Shown: piece after piece, positions 5,463 to 28,200 of the stretch
How positions within the stretch are numbered: position 1 is the stretch's first letter
How the letters are laid out: each line of letters starts with the position of its first letter
Assembly: GCA_021613535.1 (NCBI GenBank)
Contig: CP075493.1
Span: 8,246,001-8,310,000, forward strand
Length of the DNA stretch: 64,000 nucleotides
Direction of reading: 5' to 3'
From: Adineta vaga
Taxonomy: Eukaryota; Animalia; Rotifera
Program-made: the position numbers and the translations under genes
Notes under the pieces: generated by a model
The model's database searches: none
The model's input: only the letters and a program-made list of their open reading frames with translations
Told to the model about the DNA's origin: nothing

Positions 5463-7342
5463 ATGAAATTGTCACATACGGAGATCATATTCAAATCGAA
5501 TCTATCCAATAGACATGAGTTCGTCGTCCCTAATAGAATAGATCAAACTACTCATGTCATTGTACAATCAAAACAAAGAACATGTTTAGAACGATATTTG
5601 TCACCTAGCAAAAGAGTAGGTTTTTTTCATGTCATCAATATATGTCGAAGTTTATCAAAAAGACAAGGAGTACATTCGCTTATTACTATGAATGCAGCAG
5701 GTTTTGAATATACAGACAGTGAAGATACCGCTCGATGCAATATTTGTGGTCTAGAAGTATCTGGGTGGATAGTGGACATGAAACCGTTTACTATTCATGC
5801 TCAACGAAGTCCAACGTGTGATTTTGTTCGTTCGATGATACCCGAAGGTCTCGTCAGTACATTCTCAAATCTGACCTACTTATCAACGGATGACCCATCA
5901 AATGACCATGATGAAAACCCGCCGAAACGCAAGAAACTAGAAACAAGTCAATGGCGGCAATCTCTGCCAACTCTAATCGAGGTTGATAAACTACAACAAA
6001 TACGAAAGAGAACATTTTCACATTGGCCTCAAGGTGCATCTCCATCCAGTGCACAAATGATCGATGCAGGCTTCTTTAACTGTAATGTCGGTGATCGTGT
6101 AATGTGTTTGTATTGTAATATTATCTGTCAACAATGGACACGTCACACAGACGATCCATGTGAAGTTCATAAGACATTATCACCCAAATGTCCATATGTC
6201 ATTGCCATGATGAAACGTCAACAGACAGCATCGATAATAATCCTCAATGAATATCCAACAAATGAGAATAGTGCAGGCACATTTAGATATAATGAACTAG
6301 TACATACAGCTGCATGCCATCCTTCTTACATTGAAATTCCACAGCGATATAGTTCATTCGAAACGTGGCCAAAAGAAAATCTACCATGTGTGGATAATTT
6401 GGTCCGAGCAGGCTTTTTCTATACTGGTACAAAGACTATTGTGACGTGCTTTTATTGCAATGGATCTCTGCAAAACTGGGGTGCAAATGATAATCCAATG
6501 ATTGAACATGCTCGATGGTTTCCAAACTGTGCATATGCGAAACAGTTGTGCGGTGCCGAACTATATAAAAAAATACAAGAATCGAAAAAAAGTCATGAAG
6601 GTAAGTTATTCGTTTTTGCTATGAAATATATAATAATATGTCAGTATATTTTGTTTTCAGACAGAAATACATTGAACGATCGTCAAGTTGTTAGAGGGTT
6701 GTTGAATATACCTGATGAAAATTTTTTATCGCGACTAGTTGCTGCTCGACTAGATTTAATAATTTCACAAAGGCTACTTGACCAAAATCATCGACTATCC
6801 ATAATTAAACGTTGTTGGGAAGATCAATTAAGAATAAAACGTAAGTAGAAAGAATAACAATTGATCGAATGAACCATTCAATTTCCACTGTAGATGATGA
6901 CTTTGTTGATGATTGCGATCTGCTCGTAAGTTGTATAATTTTACAGAAGCAAATTATCTTTATTGATGGAAAGAAAGAAAATATTCTTATTCCAAGTCAA
7001 GCAATAAATTCATCTCCTCTACTCAATTCATCAACAACGAATACAGATGTTGATATGTCGACATCATCAGAATCGGTTGTAAGTGAAACGAATTTACCAA
7101 CATCAGAAAACATCGGCCAGAAAAATCAGAATTTAAAAGCATCAGTAGTAAATACTGTTTCACAAGATCGCAAAGAAGATCCACAACCATCTAATCCTTG
7201 TGTTTTATGCCTAACAGAAGAAAAAAAACTGGCTTGTATACCTTGCGGACATTTAGCTACTTGTGTGTCATGTGGTCATTCTCTTCGAGTATGTCCTGTG
7301 TGTCGTCGAGAGATCGAAGCTTTTGTTCGTATCTATCTGTAA
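5463..7342 (+). CDS. Inhibitor of apoptosis, copy 2 (3 BIR + UBA-like + RING)
   Basis: Three BIRs (CNIC, CLYC, CFYC), introns at about 6601-6660 and 6842-6893, RING ending CPVCRREIEAFVRIYL. First ATG is at 5463; the ORF track uses TTG 5430. Confidence 0.93.
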
Positions 7343-13764: not shown

Positions 13765-15789
13765 ATGAATAAAGACTTCTATTCTACTCCTGTAGTATAT
13801 GACTCCACTACTGGTCTGACAGAATATCCTTTTATGATGAACAATGAGCAGCAATCATTGAGTTTAACTTCGGTATCAAAAACAATTTTCGCAAGTCGTA
13901 TACTTTCAAAATGCGACTCACTATTGAAAAGTATTGAAACAATCAAGAAACTCACACAAAAATCAGGTGTACACTCTTCAATTGCAATGCAAGCAGCAGG
14001 ATTTCATTATATAAACATTGGAGACACGGTTCGTTGTGTTTCATGTGGATTGGAAGTATCTGATTGGACAGCTGACATGGCACCATTCACTATTCATAAA
14101 CAGCGAAGTCCAACGTGCACTTTCGTTTCTTCTATGATGCCTGACCAAAAAATCACTATTTCGTTACCGATTATGTCAACCATCGCAGATGATCAAAATC
14201 CAGCGAAGAGACAAAAGAAAGATTTCTCGCAAGAAATTTGTCAACCTCATCTTCTAACTGAAGTAAACCTATTACAACAAATACGAAAGAGAACATTTTC
14301 ACATTGGCCTCAAGGTGCATCTCCATCCAGTGCACAAATGATCGATGCAGGCTTCTTCAACTGTAATGTCGGTGATCGTGTGATGTGTTTGTATTGTAAT
14401 ATTATCTGTCAACAATGGACACGTCACACAGACGATCCATGTGAAGTTCATAAGACATTATCGCCCAAATGTCCATATGTGATTGCCAAGGAGAAACGTC
14501 GACAAGCAGCATCGATTCGTATAATGAATGATCAAGCTACGAGAGACAATATGGATGGTGTGATGAACAATGATCCATTTCGATGTAATGAGATAGTGTA
14601 TACAGCTGCATGTCATCCTGCTTATATCGAGATTCCACGTCGACATGCATCTTTCGAAAAGTGGACAAATGAAAATCAACCATCTGTAGATGATTTGGTC
14701 CGAGCAGGCTTTTTCTATACTGGTACAAACACAGTAGTGACATGTTTCTATTGCAATGGATCTCTGCAAAATTGGGGTGCAAATGATAATCCAATGATTG
14801 AACATGCTCGATGGTTTCCAAACTGTGCATATGCGAAACAGTTGTGCGGTGCCGAACTATATAAAAAAATACAAGAATCGAAAAAGGCTCAGCAAGGTTT
14901 GATATCATTTAGTATTTATTGATGGAAGGAAAAATTTGATTGTTCATTTTCGAATGTAGAGAAAGCCAAGGCAAACGATTCGAGTAGACACAATGGAAAC
15001 ACAACTGAGAGTGTAGGACGAGGACAGTTGGGTATACCAGACGAAAGCACGTTATCTAGATTTGTGGCAGCTCGACTTGATCTACCCGTTTCTCAGAAAC
15101 TGTTAGATCGAAATTTCAAAATGTCAGTTATCAAGCGTTGTTGGGAAGATCAGCTTCGATTAAAACGTAATATATAACATTATGCTTTTTTTTGGAAAAG
15201 AAAATTCACAGAATTATTATTTTTTTGTAATATAGATGATGATTATATTGATCTATGTGATCTATTCATGGCATGCCTGATTCTTCAAAAGCAAATTGAT
15301 TGTATTGGCGGAAAGAAAGAAAATATTATTGTTCCAAATATAGCAATAAAGAAGCTTCGTGAACGAGAACTAGCAGGTATTTATGACGCAAATAAATTGA
15401 GATAATAGTTCACGCTTTGTGCCATTGCAGAGATTGCTGCGCGTGAACAGGTGGTCGACACATCTTTGCAGACGAATACTTCTAATACAACAGATGTGGA
15501 TATGACAACATCATCTACTAGTAGTACTGGTGATGAGAATATTGAACAATCGACAACAAATATTCAAAGTGAAAAATGTAGCAAAACTCAGAATGCGACA
15601 GGAGCTGGAAACAAGCAGGCAGACAATGCTACACCATCCAATCCATGTGTGTTGTGCCTGGAAGAAGAGAGACGTCTGGCTTGTATGCCCTGCGGTCATC
15701 TGGCTACATGTGTTCCATGCGGTCATTCTCTTCGATCGTGTCCAATATGTCGTACTGCTATTGACGCCTTCGTTCGAATATATTTATAG
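13765..15789 (+). CDS. Inhibitor of apoptosis, copy 3
   Basis: Three BIRs; introns at 14897-14959, 15167-~15235 and ~15377-15430; RING ending CPICRTAIDAFVRIYL. Confidence 0.93.
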
Positions 15790-18207
15790 AACAGTACTGA
15801 TCTTCTTCATTCGCATCAGCTGAAGCTACTTATCGTAGTGAACTATCAAAATACTTTTTCATACATTGTACAACAATTTTATACCAGAATATTTTTTCAA
15901 CTTTTGAACGATTAAAACAGAGGAAAGCTTTTCCTATCGAATATTCAGATGAAGAGTTATGGATAAATATTTAGACATTTTACAATTCAGCTTTCGATGA
16001 CTTTGATTGTATTAGCAGCCAGTGTCAGTTAGACTTCTAAATTGTAGAGAATTCAGCACCAAATTGGCTTATCTCAGAAAAATTTCCGTAACTCTTTTGA
16101 TCTTTCGCCTACATGACAGAAAATCAATTACAAAAAACATTAAATAAAAAGCACTATTGTAGAGAAGGATATACATATAATGTATAGAATTCTCCAAATA
16201 AGAGTCGAAACATTATATGGCTATAGATAATTCTTTATGAGTTTCACAAACACTTCTATTACAATTTCTTAATTAGAGCTTTCATATTACTGTTTTAATT
16301 GCTGAAAAATTGAACAAATATTTCGTCAAAAGCTTTCGTAGTATTCACTAGTTTTCAATGAAATCCAAACGCTTTATAAAAGCGCATCACCAGTGGTTCG
16401 TCGAATACTATCATTAAACTATTTTTTTTTGGAAAATAATGCGTAATTCTGATTTGTTTTATATAAATAAAATTTAAAACGAAATATTATTGGTAATATA
16501 AAGACCATTGACAATGCTCAACGTTTTGAGATAAATGATAAATAATAAGACGCTATCCAATTTTAAAATTCTTGAATATTTTCCAGAAAATTGCAAATAC
16601 TACTTCTGTGATATACAGAGAGGACCTGATTTTCGAAATAATCCGAATTTCATTACGTATGTAACGTTACGTATCAAAGATGACAAGAGGCCACGTTTTC
16701 TTTGGCCTGGTATACAGGTTCGGTTGGGCTAGTTTATATCTTGTACCGATTCTGTTTGCATAGTAAAAGTGAGAAAAAACCACTACTCACAGGCTATGTA
16801 ACGAGTAGTTTTATATGCATCAAACGTTCATGGCTGAATCTACGAATAACATGAAATCAAATGTTTGACAGAACCAAAATATATTATGCAAATATAATCA
16901 ACGCTGAGCAAAAGCGTGTCCATTACAAAAGACTTTACTATAAAAAAGGACGACAAACGATATTATTTGCATTCTTCCACCGAAAAGAGATGTACTTACT
17001 ATTTGTTCTTTTACTGTTGAAACAAGCAAATTCTAATAACTGTCACTTACTTGTATGTGATAACATACTGTTATCAAAACATGATGCAGTCTTCTACGTT
17101 TTTTCAAATTATTTACTGAAAATAACTAATCTTTTGTCATATCAGACCATTAACTTTGTTCTATCCTGTAATAGTTCTCTACGCACATCTACACCCTTTC
17201 ATGTTTTCTCTTTGTAGATTCTGGTACAGGCATCTATCACTTTGTTTGCAAGCTGAGAAAGACTACGAAATACGGTGACTTTTCGCTTAAAAATCTTGAA
17301 TTCAAATAAAGCGTTTGTTACGCACGCTTCTATATTTCACTATAGATATTTATTATTGGTAACAGCTATCGTCAGATACAATGTGACTAAATCCACATTC
17401 TTAAGATAATGAAATTTGATAAATTATTCATTTATGGGAAAAAAAACATGACATTTTAATGACTCATTGTTGAAAAAATCATTGACTATGAAAAGCAAGG
17501 AAAGAAGAAAAAACCAAGCATGTGGCTACTGAGAAGTGTCGCAACAGGAAGACATGTTTGATTGTTGGTGTGACTCATGAAACATACTTATTTCACAGCT
17601 ATTATGCATATAAGAAAGTACTGAACATAACCGTGACAATTGATGCAGTATTTTCACAATAGATAGTGATGAATAATATTGGAAGATTATTTTATTATCA
17701 TAACATTGTAGAACAATTATTTCCAAAAAATCGATTTGCCGCTGACGACACGTTCTGTTATAGTTCCAGATTGCTTATTTAACAAATTGAAAATTACAAA
17801 TATGTTTGAGAACTAAATGTTGACACAACGTCAAAGGTAAGTATTTTTTAAAACAAACTGAATACTGAAGACAAAACAGTGTTGCTATCTATGATTTTTT
17901 CCTTTCTCAAAATGACAGATTTTTCATAATATCCAAAAATCCCTTCTATATTCATCAGACGATATTTCCCTGATGTAATACATACATATATATATGTATA
18001 TATAAATACGTATCATACTCGCATTACTACTATTGTTAAACATATTTATCATTAAAATTTCCGTTGTTTATATTTTACTTTCTCACTTGTTCGAAAGCTA
18101 TAATATTTTGAATACGACCCTATATACAATCTGAATTTTGTTGTTGTGGAATACAAGCATTTGTTGTGGTGTTTACCCAACTCTTAAACTATTTTTAGTA
18201 ATTAATC

Positions 18208-20160
18208 ATGCCAACATTAACAGATTCACAATGCAACTCGGAAGATGTTTCAACAGCAGGAAAAACAACTTTAAAATTATTTGAATTATCCAAAAATTGT
18301 AACAAGTATCAACGCGTACGCGACATATGTCAAAAACTAAACCTCAAACAAGGTGTACACTCTTCTAGTGCAATGCAAGCAGCAGGATTTCTGTATACAA
18401 ACATTGGAGATACGGCTCGTTGTGATTCATGTGGATTGGAAGTATCTGGTTGGACAGCTGACATGGTACCATTCACTGTTCATAAACAACGAAATCCAAC
18501 ATGTGCATTTGTCTGTTCTATTCAATCATCCATTAAAATTGTACCAACACATATGTCCACTGCTCCTCAGTTAGCATCAGCAACAGTTGATGAAGAAAGA
18601 CCGTACAAACGACAAAAAACAGAGATAACAAAAACACTTGTTCAATCAAATGAGTTAGTGGAAGTGGAAAGTCTAAAAGAAATACGCAAATGCACATTTT
18701 CACATTGGCCTCAACATGCATCTCCATCCAGTGCACAAATGATCGACGCAGGTTTCTTCAACTGTAATGTTGGTGATCGAGTCATATGTATCTATTGCAA
18801 TCTTATCTGTCAACAATGGATACCTAACACAGATGATCCATGTGAAGTTCATAAGACACTATCACCGAAATGTCCATATGTTACTACAGTACTGATACGA
18901 CCGTCCATATCAATGGTACCCATAATAAATGAAAATGTAGATGGTAACACTACTGTTCCTGATGATTATATAACCCAGTTTGACCAAATTGTTACTTTAA
19001 GTGTATGTCATGCATCTTATAAAGAACTGCCCAAAAGATATGCATCATTCAGTACTTGGCCAAATGAACAGTTGCCAAATGTTGATGATTTAGTTAATGC
19101 TGGCTTTTTTTATACTGGCACAAAGACAATAGTGACATGTTTCTATTGCAATGGATCTCTGCAAAATTGGGGTGCAAACGACAATCCAATGATTGAACAT
19201 GCTCGATGGTTTCCAAATTGTGCATATGCGAAACAATTATGTGGCGCAAATTTATATAAAAAAATTCGAGCAACACAGCAACGTTTTAAAGGTATAATAC
19301 GTATTTTCCATTGATATATCATACATCATAGTCTTTCTTGATTTTAGAACGTAAAGAATCAAACAAATCAAGCAATCAGAATGAAAACTCAACAGATAAT
19401 TTGTGCGGACAAAAATCGAAGTCAATAGAAGATCGATCATTAGCTAGATTAGTAGCTGCTCGACTTGATTTACAGAGTTCACAAAACATGCTCAATCAAA
19501 ATTTTAGTTTAGCAGTTGTCAAACGTTGTTGGGAAGATCAACTTCGTTTAAAACGTTAGTTACGAAAGATGCTTGAATGAGATAGTATACATATAACCAT
19601 CCTCTTCTTCTTTCGATTTAGATGACGATTTTATTAGTGACACTGATCTATTCGTTGCTTGTAATATACTACAAAAACAAATTCAATATATTGATGGTAA
19701 AAAAAAGAATATTATTATTCCAAGTGTTGCACTACGAAAAATATTTGAAAGAAAACAGACAGGTAATTGATATCAATGAGTTATAAAATTCAATAATTAT
19801 ATGAATATTCCTTTAGAAAGCCTTGAGCACGAACAAACTTCGTCGAAATCGAAAATGGAAGTGACATCGACTATGCATAATGATGCGATGAGTGAATCAT
19901 CAGAATCGAACACGTTTGAAACGAATTCAGAGAATGTTGAAAATTCTACAAATAGAAAAGAAGATATAAAGTCAGATGATATCAGGAAGAAACTCACTGA
20001 TCAAAAATTTGATTCTTGTGTACTATGTTTAACTGAAGAGAAGTGCCTTGCTTTTATTCCTTGTGGGCACGTTGCTACATGTGTTCCGTGCGGTCATTCT
20101 CTTAAATCATGTCCTATATGTCGTACAACAACCAAAGCTTTTGTACGCGTATATCTTTGA
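18208..20160 (+). CDS. Inhibitor of apoptosis, copy 4
   Basis: Three BIRs, three short introns at homologous positions, RING ending CPICRTTTKAFVRVYL. Confidence 0.93.
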
Positions 20161-20274
20161 GACTATATTCGATGATTTGTCTTTTTTTCGTTTTTAATAA
20201 AACTTATTCAAATATGACGAAAGAATAATCTTATTTCTATTCTTGAAAAATTATCTTATTCAATAGAGTTTTAA

Positions 20275-21430
20275 CCCTTTCCAGCCACCTACCAGAAGAT
20301 ATGGCGTGCACAAAATTCTACTTCTTTATATTGTTTGTCTTTTAGATGTGGAGGTTACCGAATTCCAATAATTTGCTATTAGTTTTAGTTCAGATTGTCC
20401 AACGAAAGCATACTTAATTCATCTGTCCACTTTTTACAGTCTTATAAGATATTGGATATATTCCAATAATACTCAAAAGCTTACCGAAATAACGCAAATA
20501 TCTCCTATTTTCTCTAGGGAAGTTCACCAATTTAGTGAGATTCTAACAAAATTTACAGCACATCATAGTATTCCTATTCAGACTATTATAAAATACAAGT
20601 AGTGTGGATCTAACGGATTCGCTCACCTTTTTCTATAATAAAGAAAGTACATCGTTGCATGATTGCTTAGAAAATTCAGCCCGAAGTTGTACGTTTGTTC
20701 CCGAATCAATATAGTCATACTCTTCACAATAGGTTTATAGACGAGTTCGAAGCTTGACGTTAAGGAGCAAGAGTGGTTTCAATGTAAGACAGAATACATT
20801 GTACCGTACAATATTGGAATTAATGCTTTATGTATGCATTTTATAGACTCATCGTAGCTATTTTTCAAATAATAAGATATATTTTTTTACACTTTCAAGT
20901 TTGCTTGGCAAGGTGCTATGAACGTTTATTTCAAATTCTGAAACAATTGCTTATGTTGGGAGTGTCGCATTCCATAGACAACTGCATATAGACATATAAT
21001 TAAGTATACTTAAGATGGAAATTAATGCTTAAATGTATTGAAGTTGTTTTGTGTATGTATAGGAAGCAAGCTCCTTCATATCTTTATATTCAACGAAGTT
21101 GCTTGTTTTTTTTCCAAGTAGTGGTTATACTGAGGATGAATCAACGAACCGTAGAATTGCATACACATGGTATGGTAGGTTGGATATGGATAAATATCTT
21201 TCATGCATGGCTTTTTCATGACACTGCACTACACAATTTGTCTTTCCTTTGCATTCCTTGCCCGATATAAGAAAAAAAACGAACGTACCATGTTTTCGAT
21301 TGCGACGAACTTGCATCACAACTGCGATCGCACTGTGACTCGTAATTGCCAAAAATCCCGACTTGATGTTCTCGGTTATTCCAGTCTTAGTCACCATATC
21401 GCAGAGTTACCAAAATCGATCAGCATAATT
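20275..21430 (-). mobile_element. Decayed piggyBac-like transposon 3' part
   Basis: TTAA|CCCTTT terminus at 20271-20280. Minus-strand relic translation MLIDFGNSAIW*LRLE*PRTSSRDFWQLRVTV followed by KECKGKTNCVVQCHEKAMH, resembling the piggyBac transposase C-terminus and Cys-rich domain. The other terminus was not found. Confidence 0.4.
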
Positions 21431-22627
21431 TTTTAAGTATATTTTTTTTCTAAATTATTTTCATTAATGAACGTGAAGCAGTTGGTGATGAGAAAAAATG
21501 GAGGCTGAAGTGTCACTAAAATGTGGATAGTTATGACTACATCCTGAAAAAAGAATCTTCTGAACTATACTCTAGGTATCACCCTCAAGAGGACGATATG
21601 ATTAGTTTTCGTTTTTCGACGCATATATTCTATTTGTAAAACTACGCTTGATAAAGGTTTATAGTCAACACGTTGAGGTAGTCAATCGCTAAAAAGAATT
21701 CCGAAATAAATGCTTTCCTTCGATGGAAGAATGTTTTGCTTTAATTTTAGAGCACATGTTCCAAAGTATATGTTATCATGAGCATTGTTAGCTGAAGTGG
21801 ATCTAAATTTGTTTTATACTGACTCAACATATATAGTATGCTAGTGATATTGTTTTGTATGTATAAGTCACCGGGTTTTTCGTAATTTTTTGGTCAAATT
21901 TATATCTATGCTTAAAATTGATAAATATAATTAAAGACGCTCGTTAATGAAAAATATAGCGTTTTCAATGCACTTCACGGCGTAGCTGGCTTAATACTAA
22001 CAGAAAACTACGCCAAAAAACTTACGCTTTTTAGATGACGCGTTACGCGTACAAGCCGATATACCAATTTTATTGTTTCCTTACCACGTTTTTACGCTCT
22101 GCGAACCAAAACATGCTGGTTGTAATTTTCCAACTTCACTAAAGCAATAATTGTGACAAAATACGATTCGTCATTTTCTACCAACCAACCAGTATTTAAG
22201 ATTGCGTCATCCAGTCATTATATATTAGTCGTAACAAAACTTCGAGCTTTTCCTTTTCAGTTATGCAGTTTCTAAAATGTACGATAGCATTATTCGATTG
22301 GAAGGGTATGACATCTTCGTAGCAGAGTTTATCGATTTTTTTCCACTACTAACTGTATTTAACAAACGTTTTTATCTATGTCCTATTTGTAATCACTAGC
22401 ACAGCGAAAGCAAGACGTTTTAGCATCGTTCACCCTTACTTTCAATGGCATACAACTTCGAACTGTATGAACGGTACCATTATTGATTTTCATTTGAAAT
22501 AGTTTATATTTCATATGATTATCAAGTTAATACAATGGGAAAAGAATGAATAGGAGTTAACATAGGATCAATTAAATATTCTCTACTTTTCACATAGATC
22601 TTTCTTGATAAAATACATAATCATATC

Positions 22628-24343
22628 ATGCAGAGCAGCGTAAATATACGTTCACCAAGTGTCGAGGAAGCGGTGAACAAGTATTCTCACAACATATCTC
22701 TTGTTGGAAAATTAAAAGAGATCCGCAGTCTGTTACAAAAAAAAGTCCTTAAACAAGGTGTACACTCTTCTAGTGCAATGCAAGCAGCAGGATTTCTGTA
22801 TACAAACATTGGAGATACGGCTCGTTGTGATTCATGTGGATTGGAAGTATCTGGTTGGACAGCTGACATGGTACCATTCACTGTTCATAAACAACGAAAT
22901 CCAACATGTGCATTTGTCTGTTCTATTCAATCATCCATTAAAATTGTACCAACACATATGTCCACTGCTCCTCAGTTAGCATCAGCAACAGTTGATGAAG
23001 AAAGACCGTACAAACGACAAAAAACAGAGATAACAAAAACACTTGTTCAATCAAATGAGTTAGTGGAAGTGGAAAGTCTAAAAGAAATACGCAAATGCAC
23101 ATTTTCACATTGGCCTCAACATGCATCTCCATCCAGTGCACAAATGATCGACGCAGGTTTCTTCAACTGTAATGTTGGTGATCGAGTCATATGTATCTAT
23201 TGCAATCTTATCTGTCAACAATGGATACCTAACACAGATGATCCATGTGAAGTTCATAAGACACTATCACCGAAATGTCCATATGTTATTAAGAGTTTAG
23301 AATGTCGTCAAATATCGTTGTCAAACAACAATCAAAAATCTCAAGTGGATTCGAAAGTTCACGTTGGAGCTCAGCATGACATCTATGCAAGTTCAAAAAG
23401 TCGTTTTGCTTCTTTTGTTACATGGCAAAATGAACAGTTGCCAAATGTTGATGATTTAGTTAATGCTGGCTTTTTTTATACTGGCACAAAGACAATAGTG
23501 ACATGTTTCTATTGCAATGGATCTCTGCAAAATTGGGGTGCAAACGACAATCCAATGATTGAACATGCTCGATGGTTTCCAAATTGTGCATATGCGAAAC
23601 AATTATGTGGCCCAAATTTATACAAAAAAATACAGGATGTTAGACGACGACTTGAGAGTATGTCGATTTGAAAAATAACTACATTGCATTTGTATTCTTT
23701 TCTTAAAGGAAAAACGCTCTGTACGAGCCCCAATTTTGAATGGAGAACAACGAATGATGCTGAAAATGGTGAAAGTTTTCAGCCACATGGTGATAATGTA
23801 TTATCAAAAATGGTCGATGCTCGTCTAGATCTGCCTATATCTCAAAGAATGCTAAGGAAAAACTATGCTTTATCTATCGTTCGGCGCTGTTGGGAAGATC
23901 AACTTTTATATAAAGGTAAAATGTAAAAATACGTTATCATATTGATGAGAACTATAACATATGTTATCTTTTATTGAAGGTGACGATTTTGTTAGTGAGG
24001 GTGATCTATTCATTGCTTGTACAATTCTAAACAAACAAATTCAATATATTAATGGTAAGAAAGAAAATATTATCATACCTAGTGAATACAAGAAAAAACT
24101 ACGAGAAAGTGAACAAACAGGTATTTAATAGAGATAATGATCTTATTCCTATATGAAAATACATTCTATCTAGTAAATGGTGTGCCACCATCTACTCTTT
24201 GCAATTTATGTCACGCAGACGAGAAACGACTAGCCTGTATGCCTTGTGGTCATTTTTATGCGTGTGTACCGTGTGGACAAAAACTGCGATCGTGTATGAT
24301 ATGCCATAAAGATATTGATGGTTTCTTACGCATTTATATCTAA
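22628..24343 (+). CDS. Inhibitor of apoptosis, copy 5 (short linker, divergent RING)
   Basis: Three BIRs and three introns. The last exon goes almost directly into the RING CNLC...PCGH...CMICHKDIDGFLRIYI. Confidence 0.9.
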
Positions 24344-25292: not shown

Positions 25293-28200
25293 TTAGATCA
25301 TTGTTAAATTATCTGTAGCACTTGTATTAATCAAGAATGATGCTGGATCTTGTATCGGTGATCTATTTGGAAATGCACCAGATTTTGGAAACATAACAAG
25401 AAGAGAAATAAGAAACCAGCCAAAATAGATAAAGAAAAATGTTCGATCAAGAACCAGTGCTACTTTCTTCCAATCATTAGCATTTTTTATTGATTGATCT
25501 GTACTTTCAATTTTCTTTTTCATATGTCGAAGATAATCTCGAACTTCTTTAAGATCATTTTCAATTGAACGTAAATTTAAACTAAGTGCAGCCATGGTTT
25601 CACTTGTAGTTGAATTTTCACTGATTAAACCTTGTTTTTGTTGTTGATGATATTCATGAAAACGTTGTTTAAGTAATTTAAGTTTTTTAGAAAATTCTTC
25701 TTCATGATAATGTGGAGTAAGAAAGATTTGTTCAGGTAAAAGAAGAGCACCGGGTGAAGGCGGACCATGACGTGATGATACACTTGTTGGTAATGTTTGT
25801 GGTGGTTTGGGAGCCATACAATAGAATCGTGCTAAGAATTGAAGAAATATACGACGTATTGATGGTGGAATTCCTTGACGACGATCACCACGAACATATA
25901 TATGGATGACAATAGTAGCAAGAACGGCTGTTACAGAAACAACAACCATATTAACACAATAATAATAACCAATTTTCGGTGTACCACCTCCACCTAAAAC
26001 ATACAAACAAATTATTCAAGTTTGATTTCTAGTCGAAATATAATGATCATCTAGTAAATTTGATCTTCTAAAGATCCGTGAGCGATTCCGACTGTTGAAT
26101 TAATCATCCTACGCACGATGCTAAACAATAATCTAATCATCTGCATCTTCAAATAAGAATAAGATTAATGTAGATGCAGGAAGAAATGAAGAGAGAATGC
26201 GCTTTGTTTATCAAATTTCATATTAAGTGTTAGATCAGATGGACAGTCTACATAGAATTCTTCATCAATAAAAGAAAAAATACCGATTATTTAGACGTGA
26301 AACTCGAGCAAAAAAATGTCATGTCATTGGATAGACGAACGATGTATGCCAATAGCAGTAAAGTCAAGGGTGTTTTAATGAATTGTTTACTTAATGAACA
26401 GATCCTAAGAAGGAAAAAGCAATCAATTTGAACCTCATACATATGTATTTACAAATATTAACTGGTGTGATTGAGTATAAAACGATATTTTAATCTTTTT
26501 TTCTTATGATGTCAAATAGTTCTCACGCAATCTTGACATTCATGAAATAAATAATTAAATTGATCTATCATATTCGGCGAAAGAAAGAAAGAAGATGGAA
26601 AACTTTTCGTTCATACTCGGCATGGATTCAGCAAGTAGAAGTAATAGAAGAAAGAGACCAGAAAAAATCGATACAGTTAAAATCATTTTTGCTGGTGATT
26701 CAGGTGGAATCCAAAAGACAACCATAGTTGCCGCAGATAATAATAAACAAGGTAATATTAAAATATAACCATAAAGACCACCTTTTCGTTCAATAATTAA
26801 TGTATAATTTAATATTGAAAATGTTCCATTTGCTAACGATTTTTGTGCTTCAAGTTGATCTATTTTCCATTCATTGGAAACAATATATGCTGTCATATCC
26901 ATACTTGGTTTATTATCTTTAAATTCTAATTCAACTTTCGTATTATCATATGTCCAAGAACGATATTCTAATGAACATTGATGGATATCAAAAGGAAAAT
27001 TTGTTATATCAAGAAAACAAATACTAAATTGCATAATAGCTGGAACATATAAAACATCACCTGTACTTTGTATAACAGCAGAGATTTCTCGCCAATCTTT
27101 CAAACGTTCATCAGCATAATTATAAAGAACAACATCCTAAATAAAATATGAATTAAAATACAAATAGTTTTCTTCTATTTTCTTCTTACAGGTGTCCAAA
27201 TTGAATCAGCAGGTAAACATACAGTCGCTAATCCGCCGTAATCTTTTGGATCCCAAGCTAAATTCATATCTTGCCAATTAAATGTTTTCCATGTATTTGT
27301 TTGCATCTTTTGACCAGTTGAACCCAAATCAAATAATTGTGTAAATGTTAAACCAAATGTAATTACTAATGGTTGAGATACATTACGAATTGGACGTGCA
27401 TAAATCGTTGGATAATTATCAAGTAAATCACGTATAAGACGTTTTTCAAAAGTTAAACGTTTCGCTTTTCGTACAGGTATTGTCGAATTAGATGATGATG
27501 ATGGATTATTTTGTCGATATTTTGCTTGTTGATGATCTTCGTCATTGACAGTATTAACACCGTAGAAATCTAGGTTAAATAAACGAATAGATAAAAGATT
27601 CTATAGGAAAGAAAAGCTATCTCAGACAAATTTCTTATCAGATATAAAAGTCATGTTGACAAGTATTGATGAACAGATGACAATAGATTACCAAGTATTT
27701 TTTTTTTCTTTCCTAAGATTTAGATTTACATTTAGTCATAATGATAAACTATCTTCGAAATCTAATATGTTATTCAACGAAATGAAAAGTATGAATGAAT
27801 AATTGATTTTCTTAATCAAGAAGTTACCAATCGTACTCTTTATTTTTCATAGAAGTTATGTTTATTCGCTTATACATGTCCTAATATTCAGATCAGGTTT
27901 ATCTAATCTCTACGGTAACAAATGTCATTAATTCCGTTTTTTTTATATTATAATAACTAATAATTTATGAATATGATCAATGAATAAACCAATAAGGTAA
28001 AAAAAACAGGCGTTTTGTTATTCTGCATTGTTTAGAAATATGAATAAAAGATTTTCGATCAATCTTTTTGTTTGACAAAAAAAATCTAATCATAAAAAAT
28101 AAGTGCATTATTAAAAAAAAGAAGCAAACACATGTATTTTATATAAGATTTCACTGATTATTTATGTACGATATGATTATTATTCTTTGTAGAGTCGTTT

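Follow-up and report, generated by a model that had tools for sequence, protein, structure and literature searches.

Identical tracts in two neighbouring, otherwise divergent IAP genes of Adineta vaga: a probable case of non-allelic gene conversion

How can two neighbouring genes be identical over hundreds of bases and yet be barely alignable elsewhere? The question is raised by a stretch of 64,000 nucleotides on chromosome 1 of the rotifer Adineta vaga AV20 (positions 8246001-8310000; hereafter, the window), taken from an assembly of 100.8 Mb in six chromosomes (PMC8494291). At this locus lies a cluster of six IAP genes of the BIR-BIR-BIR-UBA-RING type (copies 0-5). Copies 4 and 5, which a word search of the protein collection matched to I4U23_002633 and I4U23_002634, stand in direct orientation with 4.4 kb between them and share two tracts without a mismatch. 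We conclude, with a probability of roughly 0.8, that these tracts arose by non-allelic gene conversion between the two genes, anchored in BIR homology and with copy 4 as the likely donor. The features concerned, in positions of the window, are the following.

18208-20160, plus strand: IAP copy 4 (I4U23_002633); exon 1 with BIR1, BIR2 and BIR3, then UBA-like exons and a RING exon
22628-24343, plus strand: IAP copy 5 (I4U23_002634); four exons, protein P0002 of 515 amino acids
18346-18883, plus strand: tract 1 in copy 4; BIR1, the BIR1-BIR2 linker and BIR2
22751-23288, plus strand: tract 1 in copy 5, counterpart of 18346-18883
19062-19245, plus strand: tract 2 in copy 4; BIR3 core
23428-23611, plus strand: tract 2 in copy 5, counterpart of 19062-19245
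18884-19061, plus strand: BIR2-BIR3 linker of copy 4; 178 bp, coding, unconverted, 42% identical to the copy 5 linker
23289-23427, plus strand: BIR2-BIR3 linker of copy 5; 139 bp, 43-47% identical to every other linker

Tract 1 spans 538 bp and tract 2 184 bp, both with 0 mismatches, as a preliminary description of this DNA had reported. Each lies within the single long first exon of its gene, and exon or module borders are not followed exactly. Beyond the two tracts, a MAFFT global alignment of both genes contained no identical run of 20 bp or more. At three edges (both sides of tract 1 and the left side of tract 2) identity falls from 50 of 50 alignment columns to 13-23 of 50, the level of unrelated sequence in DNA this AT-rich, and the drop to 30-45% is immediate. 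The left edge of tract 2 falls within BIR3 homology. On the right of tract 2 the decay is gradual: 21 bp with 3 mismatches follow before the sequences cease to be similar. The sharp edges of the preliminary description are thus found at three of the four positions. Its account of strong divergence outside the tracts was borne out for the flanks (30-45%), the linkers (42%) and the RING domains (51-64% at the amino acid level), as was the 39-bp length difference between the BIR2-BIR3 linkers. These linkers are, however, coding sequence of the same first exon and not intron, which corrects the earlier reading.

In the whole assembly, only two places hold either tract at 100%, and the next-best matches reach 96% (BIR2 only) or 87% and lower. 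A mobile element carrying the BIR blocks was rejected on this count. Neither BIR2-BIR3 linker has a second copy anywhere in the assembly, so no third donor is needed, and a third-party donor of either linker was likewise rejected. GC-biased conversion was considered as well and gave no clear signal, the GC content being 37-39% in the tracts and 33-39% in neighbouring coding parts.

The identity extends to silent sites. In a codon alignment of the six first exons (copy 0, which has no BIR1, being omitted from the BIR1 row), synonymous divergence (dS) between copies 4 and 5 compares with that of the other pairs as follows.

BIR1: copies 4 and 5, dS = 0; other pairs, nucleotide identity 56-87%, dS 0.25 to over 2
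BIR2: copies 4 and 5, dS = 0; other pairs, nucleotide identity 77-98%, dS 0.10-1.5
BIR3: copies 4 and 5, dS = 0; other pairs, nucleotide identity 74-93%, dS 0.21-2.8
BIR1-BIR2 linker: copies 4 and 5, identical (dS = 0); other pairs, 43-55% and unalignable

Since identity reaches synonymous sites, protein-level selection is no explanation, as had already been argued. The two checks suggested at that time, dS and a GENECONV-type analysis, agree. In a permutation of the latter type (543 polymorphic ungapped sites in copies 1-5, 5000 shuffles), copies 4 and 5 shared a run of 268 matching polymorphic sites, a length reached in 0 of 5000 shuffles. The pair of copies 2 and 3 was also significant, with a run of 36 (global P = 0.0026).

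Furthermore, the grouping given by the tracts contradicts that given by the tails, as judged from identity comparisons. Copy 5 equals copy 4 in the BIR blocks but departs from the rest of the cluster in linker and RING. The RING domains of copies 1-4 are 75-89% identical to one another in amino acids and 51-64% to that of copy 5, and the BIR2-BIR3 linker of copy 5 stands apart whereas that of copy 4 can still be aligned with those of copies 0-3. Copy 5 is also without the long Ser/Thr-rich stretch that precedes the RING. Within the tracts the sequence conforms to the type of the cluster. The closest outside relative of tract 1 is BIR1 of copy 3 (13965-14114, plus strand; dS = 0.25), at 87% over the block and 91% over the best 150 bp (against 18351-18500), and BIR2 of the tract is 95% identical to copy 0 over the block and 96% over a 199-bp match. 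Copy 5 is complete and copy 4 probably so, and each has kept its own unique linker and flanks.

Gene conversion is supported as the only reading that fits a dS of 0, saturated divergence outside the tracts, sharp edges, retained flanks and the conflict between tracts and tails. Most simply, synthesis-dependent strand annealing after a break would have carried two pieces of copy 4, the likely donor, into copy 5, the recipient: the BIR1-to-BIR2 block and the BIR3 core. The N-terminus, the BIR2-BIR3 linker, the introns, the UBA exons and the RING would have stayed as they were in each gene. The BIR-coding stretches, as the sole remaining islands of homology, would have anchored strand invasion and annealing, so that the tracts end at the limits of homology. 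Tract 1 would have crossed the heterology of the BIR1-BIR2 linker as in gap repair between two homology anchors. Because the BIR2-BIR3 heterology was left unconverted although that between BIR1 and BIR2 was converted, two events would be required, or else a single discontinuous one through patchy heteroduplex repair or template switching. The repair pathway, the direction, the number of events and their age are what we infer from these patterns; sequence comparison makes copy 4 the probable donor, since outside the tracts it groups with copies 1-3 whereas copy 5 departs from the cluster in linker and RING. Both gene conversion and frequent recombinational repair are documented in A. vaga (PMC8494291). 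Provided that the identity is real on the assembled haplotype, 0 differences over 722 bp put divergence at no more than about 0.4% (95% upper bound); this is less than the 1.7% between haplotypes and far less than the 13% between homoeologues (PMC8494291). Thus, of the "very recent ectopic gene conversion" proposed in the preliminary description, the conversion is supported, but its recency depends on perfect identity in a haploid, polished assembly. Similarly, the same BIR modules do stand on two different tails, as that description held, but nothing points to the reciprocal exchange implied by its word "swaps".

Is the shared sequence real DNA or a product of assembly? We examined Logan contigs over 18150-24149 from three DNA runs of three studies (X1, X2 and X4) and from an RNA-like run (X15). 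In all three DNA runs, the contig of the copy 4 flank stops at 18367 and that of the copy 5 flank at 22772, and a 233-bp contig (18854-19086) holds the end of tract 1, the copy 4 linker and the start of tract 2. This pattern fits a k=31 graph of two genes that share 18338-18883 and again the sequence from 19057 on. The contig breaks lie at most 8 bp from the tract edges of the assembly in three studies, and the reads imply that the shared sequence begins to the left of those edges, by 8 bp in tract 1 and by 5 bp in tract 2. The X2 contig 18514-18721 has a depth of 51, against 23-30 in single-copy flanks, with 0 differences over 208 bp, and it ends where copy 0 turns identical to the tract (18691/18692). 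In X15, one contig (22287-23551) connects the copy 5 flank, tract 1, linker 5 and tract 2. A wholesale assembly artefact is unlikely.

Read depth, which had been proposed as a check on consensus collapse, and the contigs speak for shared sequence at double depth, but the contigs also suggest that a few variants occur within tract 1. In X1 and X15 an alternative branch departs from the reference at four places, the equivalents of 23096, 23107, 23129 and 23138. At 18691/23096, at the start of BIR2, a conserved Arg of all other paralogs is replaced by Cys (TGC) in copies 4 and 5, and the first change of the branch is CGC, giving back the Arg. The branch is not simply a misplaced copy 0, as only the first of the four changes matches copy 0 or any other paralog. 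Such variants may distinguish either alleles or gene copies: in AV20 a clone with 1.7% heterozygosity was collapsed into a haploid assembly, and its laboratory lines differ in the heterozygosity that they have lost (PMC8494291). All four runs contradict the reference at 22718, 22731 and 22739, and by the arithmetic of contig ends the reference is also unsupported at 22743, 22745, 22746, 22750 and 23427. At these places (22718-22750 and 23427) the assembled copy 5 may represent the other haplotype or local errors. The change at 23427 would convert WQ to the canonical WP of BIR3.

Several of these points weigh against conversion as we describe it. The tracts fill the alignable sequence to its edge, leaving almost no unconverted homology for priming on the left of tract 1; the unconverted BIR2-BIR3 heterology splits them, though the BIR1-BIR2 heterology was converted; and the direction of donation depends solely on copy 5 being the outlier. 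The perfect identity comes from a haploid, short-read-polished assembly, and the runs do not reproduce it throughout: the four-change branch is slightly deeper than the reference branch in X1 (77.6 against 69.5), the X2 tract contig begins only at 18514 (break 18513/18514), and the X4 tract contig has nine differences at positions not located. The BIR blocks could then have been about 97-99% identical after an older conversion, the last differences being erased by multi-mapping reads during polishing. Perfect identity and a very recent date would in that case be exaggerated, because differences between copies and haplotypes had been erased. The haploid collapse at 1.7% heterozygosity, the ties of the branch to the copy 5 flanks in X15 and the unsupported reference positions listed above would all fit such an artefact, which we consider unlikely but far from negligible. 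The position of the contig breaks in three studies, the double-depth tract contigs and the clean 208 bp in X2 argue the other way. Moreover, other tracts in AV20 retain their mismatches (96-98%), so polishing did not flatten similar sequences generally. Even if all 13 differences were copy-specific, tract 1 would still be 97.6% identical beside flanks at 30-45%, and the conversion itself would stand.

The remaining alternatives are less probable. That the BIR blocks belong to one gene only and were pasted into a second, unrelated gene in assembly has only the general risk of tandem repeats in its favour. It is very improbable, as contigs connect each of the two flanks with the tract and also bridge tract 1, linker 4 and tract 2; flank 5, tract 1, linker 5 and the beginning of tract 2 follow one another on the RNA-like contig; and neither first exon is interrupted, each coding for three BIR domains. 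A replication error with microhomology-mediated template switching, several switches occurring in one event, would differ from classical conversion by homologous recombination. A single such event would yield two patches, an untouched linker and edges at the homology limit. It would also suit two patches that lie inside 900 bp, neither changed since, and three edges with no unconverted homology beyond them. Nevertheless, the edges coincide with the borders of conserved BIR blocks, as homology-guided exchange predicts; tract 2 begins within BIR3 homology and loses identity only gradually on its right; and the junctions are free of insertions or rearrangements, all of which leaves template switching rather doubtful. 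Finally, purifying selection or codon constraint on the BIR stretches, or a recent duplication followed by very fast divergence elsewhere, is barely credible. The BIR stretches are indeed conserved parts of the protein, with nonsynonymous differences (pN) among paralogs of 0.00-0.13 in BIR2 and BIR3 and up to 0.37 in BIR1, but equally constrained pairs have a dS of 0.1-2.8 where copies 4 and 5 have 0. The identical tract also takes in the BIR1-BIR2 linker, whose sequence varies freely in every other pair, and a recent duplication would have had to saturate the flanks while 722 bp carried no change.

Conversion between copies 4 and 5 was not a one-off event: the whole cluster and its counterpart on chromosome 4 are patchworks of older tracts. 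The other members of the cluster and the main older patches are as follows.

Chromosome 1 ~8241602-8242754 (L028 3247-4399), minus strand, inverted: copy 0, directly upstream of the window
~-196 to 1764: copy 1, running across the window start
5661-7339: copy 2
13918-15786: copy 3
5992-6235, plus strand: older tract, BIR2 of copy 2; 96% identical to copy 3 at 14273-14516, dS = 0.10
C4:4306498-4306967 and C4:4317977-4318446 (G000; L027, L029), inverted pair: chromosome 4 patch with unalignable flanks

Copies 2 and 3 are 96-98% identical in BIR2 and 91-93% in BIR3. BIR2 of copy 0 is about 95-96% identical to the tract from 18692 on, with a base-sharp left edge at 18691/18692, and the BIR2-BIR3 linker, elsewhere hypervariable, is 87% identical between copies 0 and 3. 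The homoeologous chromosome 4 has two IAP genes, inverted and 11 kb apart, with 470 bp in common at 97.4% (12 mismatches). Read in this way, the tracts of copies 4 and 5 appear as the youngest layer of a repeated, cluster-wide exchange in which the same process would have left tracts of graded age. Copy 0 may be a decaying copy that still exchanges tracts; its BIR1 and RING were not seen within the range searched. Its BIR3 has other residues in place of the conserved Trp-Gly stretch. At a distance of 170 kb there is a close relative of copy 1, inverted (L026 4867-6394; chromosome 1 ~8416867-8418394, minus strand) and adjoining further, more distant BIR-RING genes.

A more speculative extension, to which we give only a small chance, is that frequent, continuing conversion keeps the BIR modules uniform while the N-termini, linkers and RING tails diversify. 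An equally tentative corollary is that conversion may be fast enough to differ between haplotypes or laboratory lines of one clone. Both are hinted at because the tract ends in the reads differ by 8 and 5 bp from the assembly and because the four-change patch occurs in some runs only. Were continuing conversion to hold, the cluster of this asexual animal would resemble a cassette system in which several effector tails carry one binding module.

Non-allelic (interlocus or ectopic) conversion has been described in tandem families such as the globin genes, MHC/KIR and plant NLR clusters. The rotifer genes resemble these in their short identical tracts between old paralogs, silent sites included, in the conflict of the tracts with the gene tree, in the retention of both copies and in tracts of graded age. 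They differ in that the tracts fill whole islands of homology between unalignable stretches, which is why three edges are base-sharp, and in having two patches within one exon on either side of an untouched coding linker. In A. vaga itself, Simion et al. (2021; PMC8494291) described conversion and loss of heterozygosity and cited earlier signatures of conversion. The organism, the frequent recombinational repair and the conversion signatures are shared with our case, but theirs concerns homologous chromosomes and large tracts, whereas the IAP genes are paralogs 4.4 kb apart on one chromosome. A search of the accessible literature found no paper on bdelloid IAP clusters. This is therefore a new example of a well-known process, real but ordinary and unsurprising to a specialist; it is useful for annotation and leaves general knowledge of gene conversion unchanged. 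What it adds is a clean, well-bounded conversion between paralogs in an animal with massive repair of DNA breaks and no conventional sex, where repair-driven copying works between neighbouring genes as well as between homologous chromosomes. Through conversion, two strongly dissimilar RING tails can come to carry the same ligand-binding BIR modules. In practical terms, trees of rotifer IAP genes built on BIR will mislead, and short-read mapping and polishing are unreliable in this cluster.

What do the two genes encode? By their predicted products, copies 4 and 5 are members of the IAP (BIR-RING) family. Pfam recognized BIR (PF00653) in three stretches of each (E = 2e-52 and 2e-51 for copies 4 and 5) and a RING of the type zf-C3HC4_3 (PF13920; E = 7e-12 and 2e-10, respectively); the UBA-like exon received no score in this domain search of both genes, and the segment is conserved across the paralogs of the cluster. 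The first-exon open reading frames (ORFs), 18208-19314 and 22628-23671, encode three BIR domains each. In both genes the three BIR domains, the UBA-like segment and the C-terminal C3HC4 RING recall cIAP/XIAP-type proteins, from which the rotifer set differs as a lineage-specific, fast-diverging expansion. The closest proteins outside A. vaga are 55-63% identical to copies 4 and 5, and apart from the two AV20 models the protein collection contains no entry more than 65% identical, whether from other A. vaga assemblies or from Logan contigs. Orthologues of the copy 5 tail in other bdelloids are at best 40-47% identical among 120 matches listed, and for this reason no cross-species dating is possible.

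Copy 5 is transcribed and spliced: X15 contigs cross GT..AG joints at 23657/23709 and 23912/23977, and at the third intron (24121-24173) an RNA contig has a loose end at 24120 and continues at 24174. The annotated protein of copy 4 has 476 amino acids and no RING, and its stop falls within an unrecognized intron; the protein (P0001) maps on 18208-19290, 19353-19556 and 19633-19767. The intron in question can be read from the sequence as follows.

19763-19816, plus strand: predicted copy 4 intron absent from the annotation; 54 nt, GT..AG, phase 1

It matches the copy 5 intron 24121-24173 in position and phase, and splicing it out puts the RING ORF (19801-20160) in frame after exon 3. The RING-less annotation is probably a gene-model error, and copy 4 would be complete too. 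No sense-strand contig over the unique parts of copy 4 was present in X15. One X15 contig joins 19751-19945 to 20627-20727 with CT..AC ends, the mark of splicing in a minus-strand transcript, which is antisense to the part of copy 4 before the RING and extends into 20698-21515.

The only repeat nearby is an unrelated dispersed element of about 430 bp between copies 4 and 5 (20361-20790). It has at least 20 copies in the genome, at 81-87% identity and on several chromosomes, and a read depth 8-10 times that of its flanks. The copies often form inverted pairs about 1 kb apart and could perhaps be transposon ends. Just downstream of copy 5, an ORF of 237 amino acids (25293-26006, minus strand) resembles, by eye, the C-terminal part of a Cys-loop receptor subunit.

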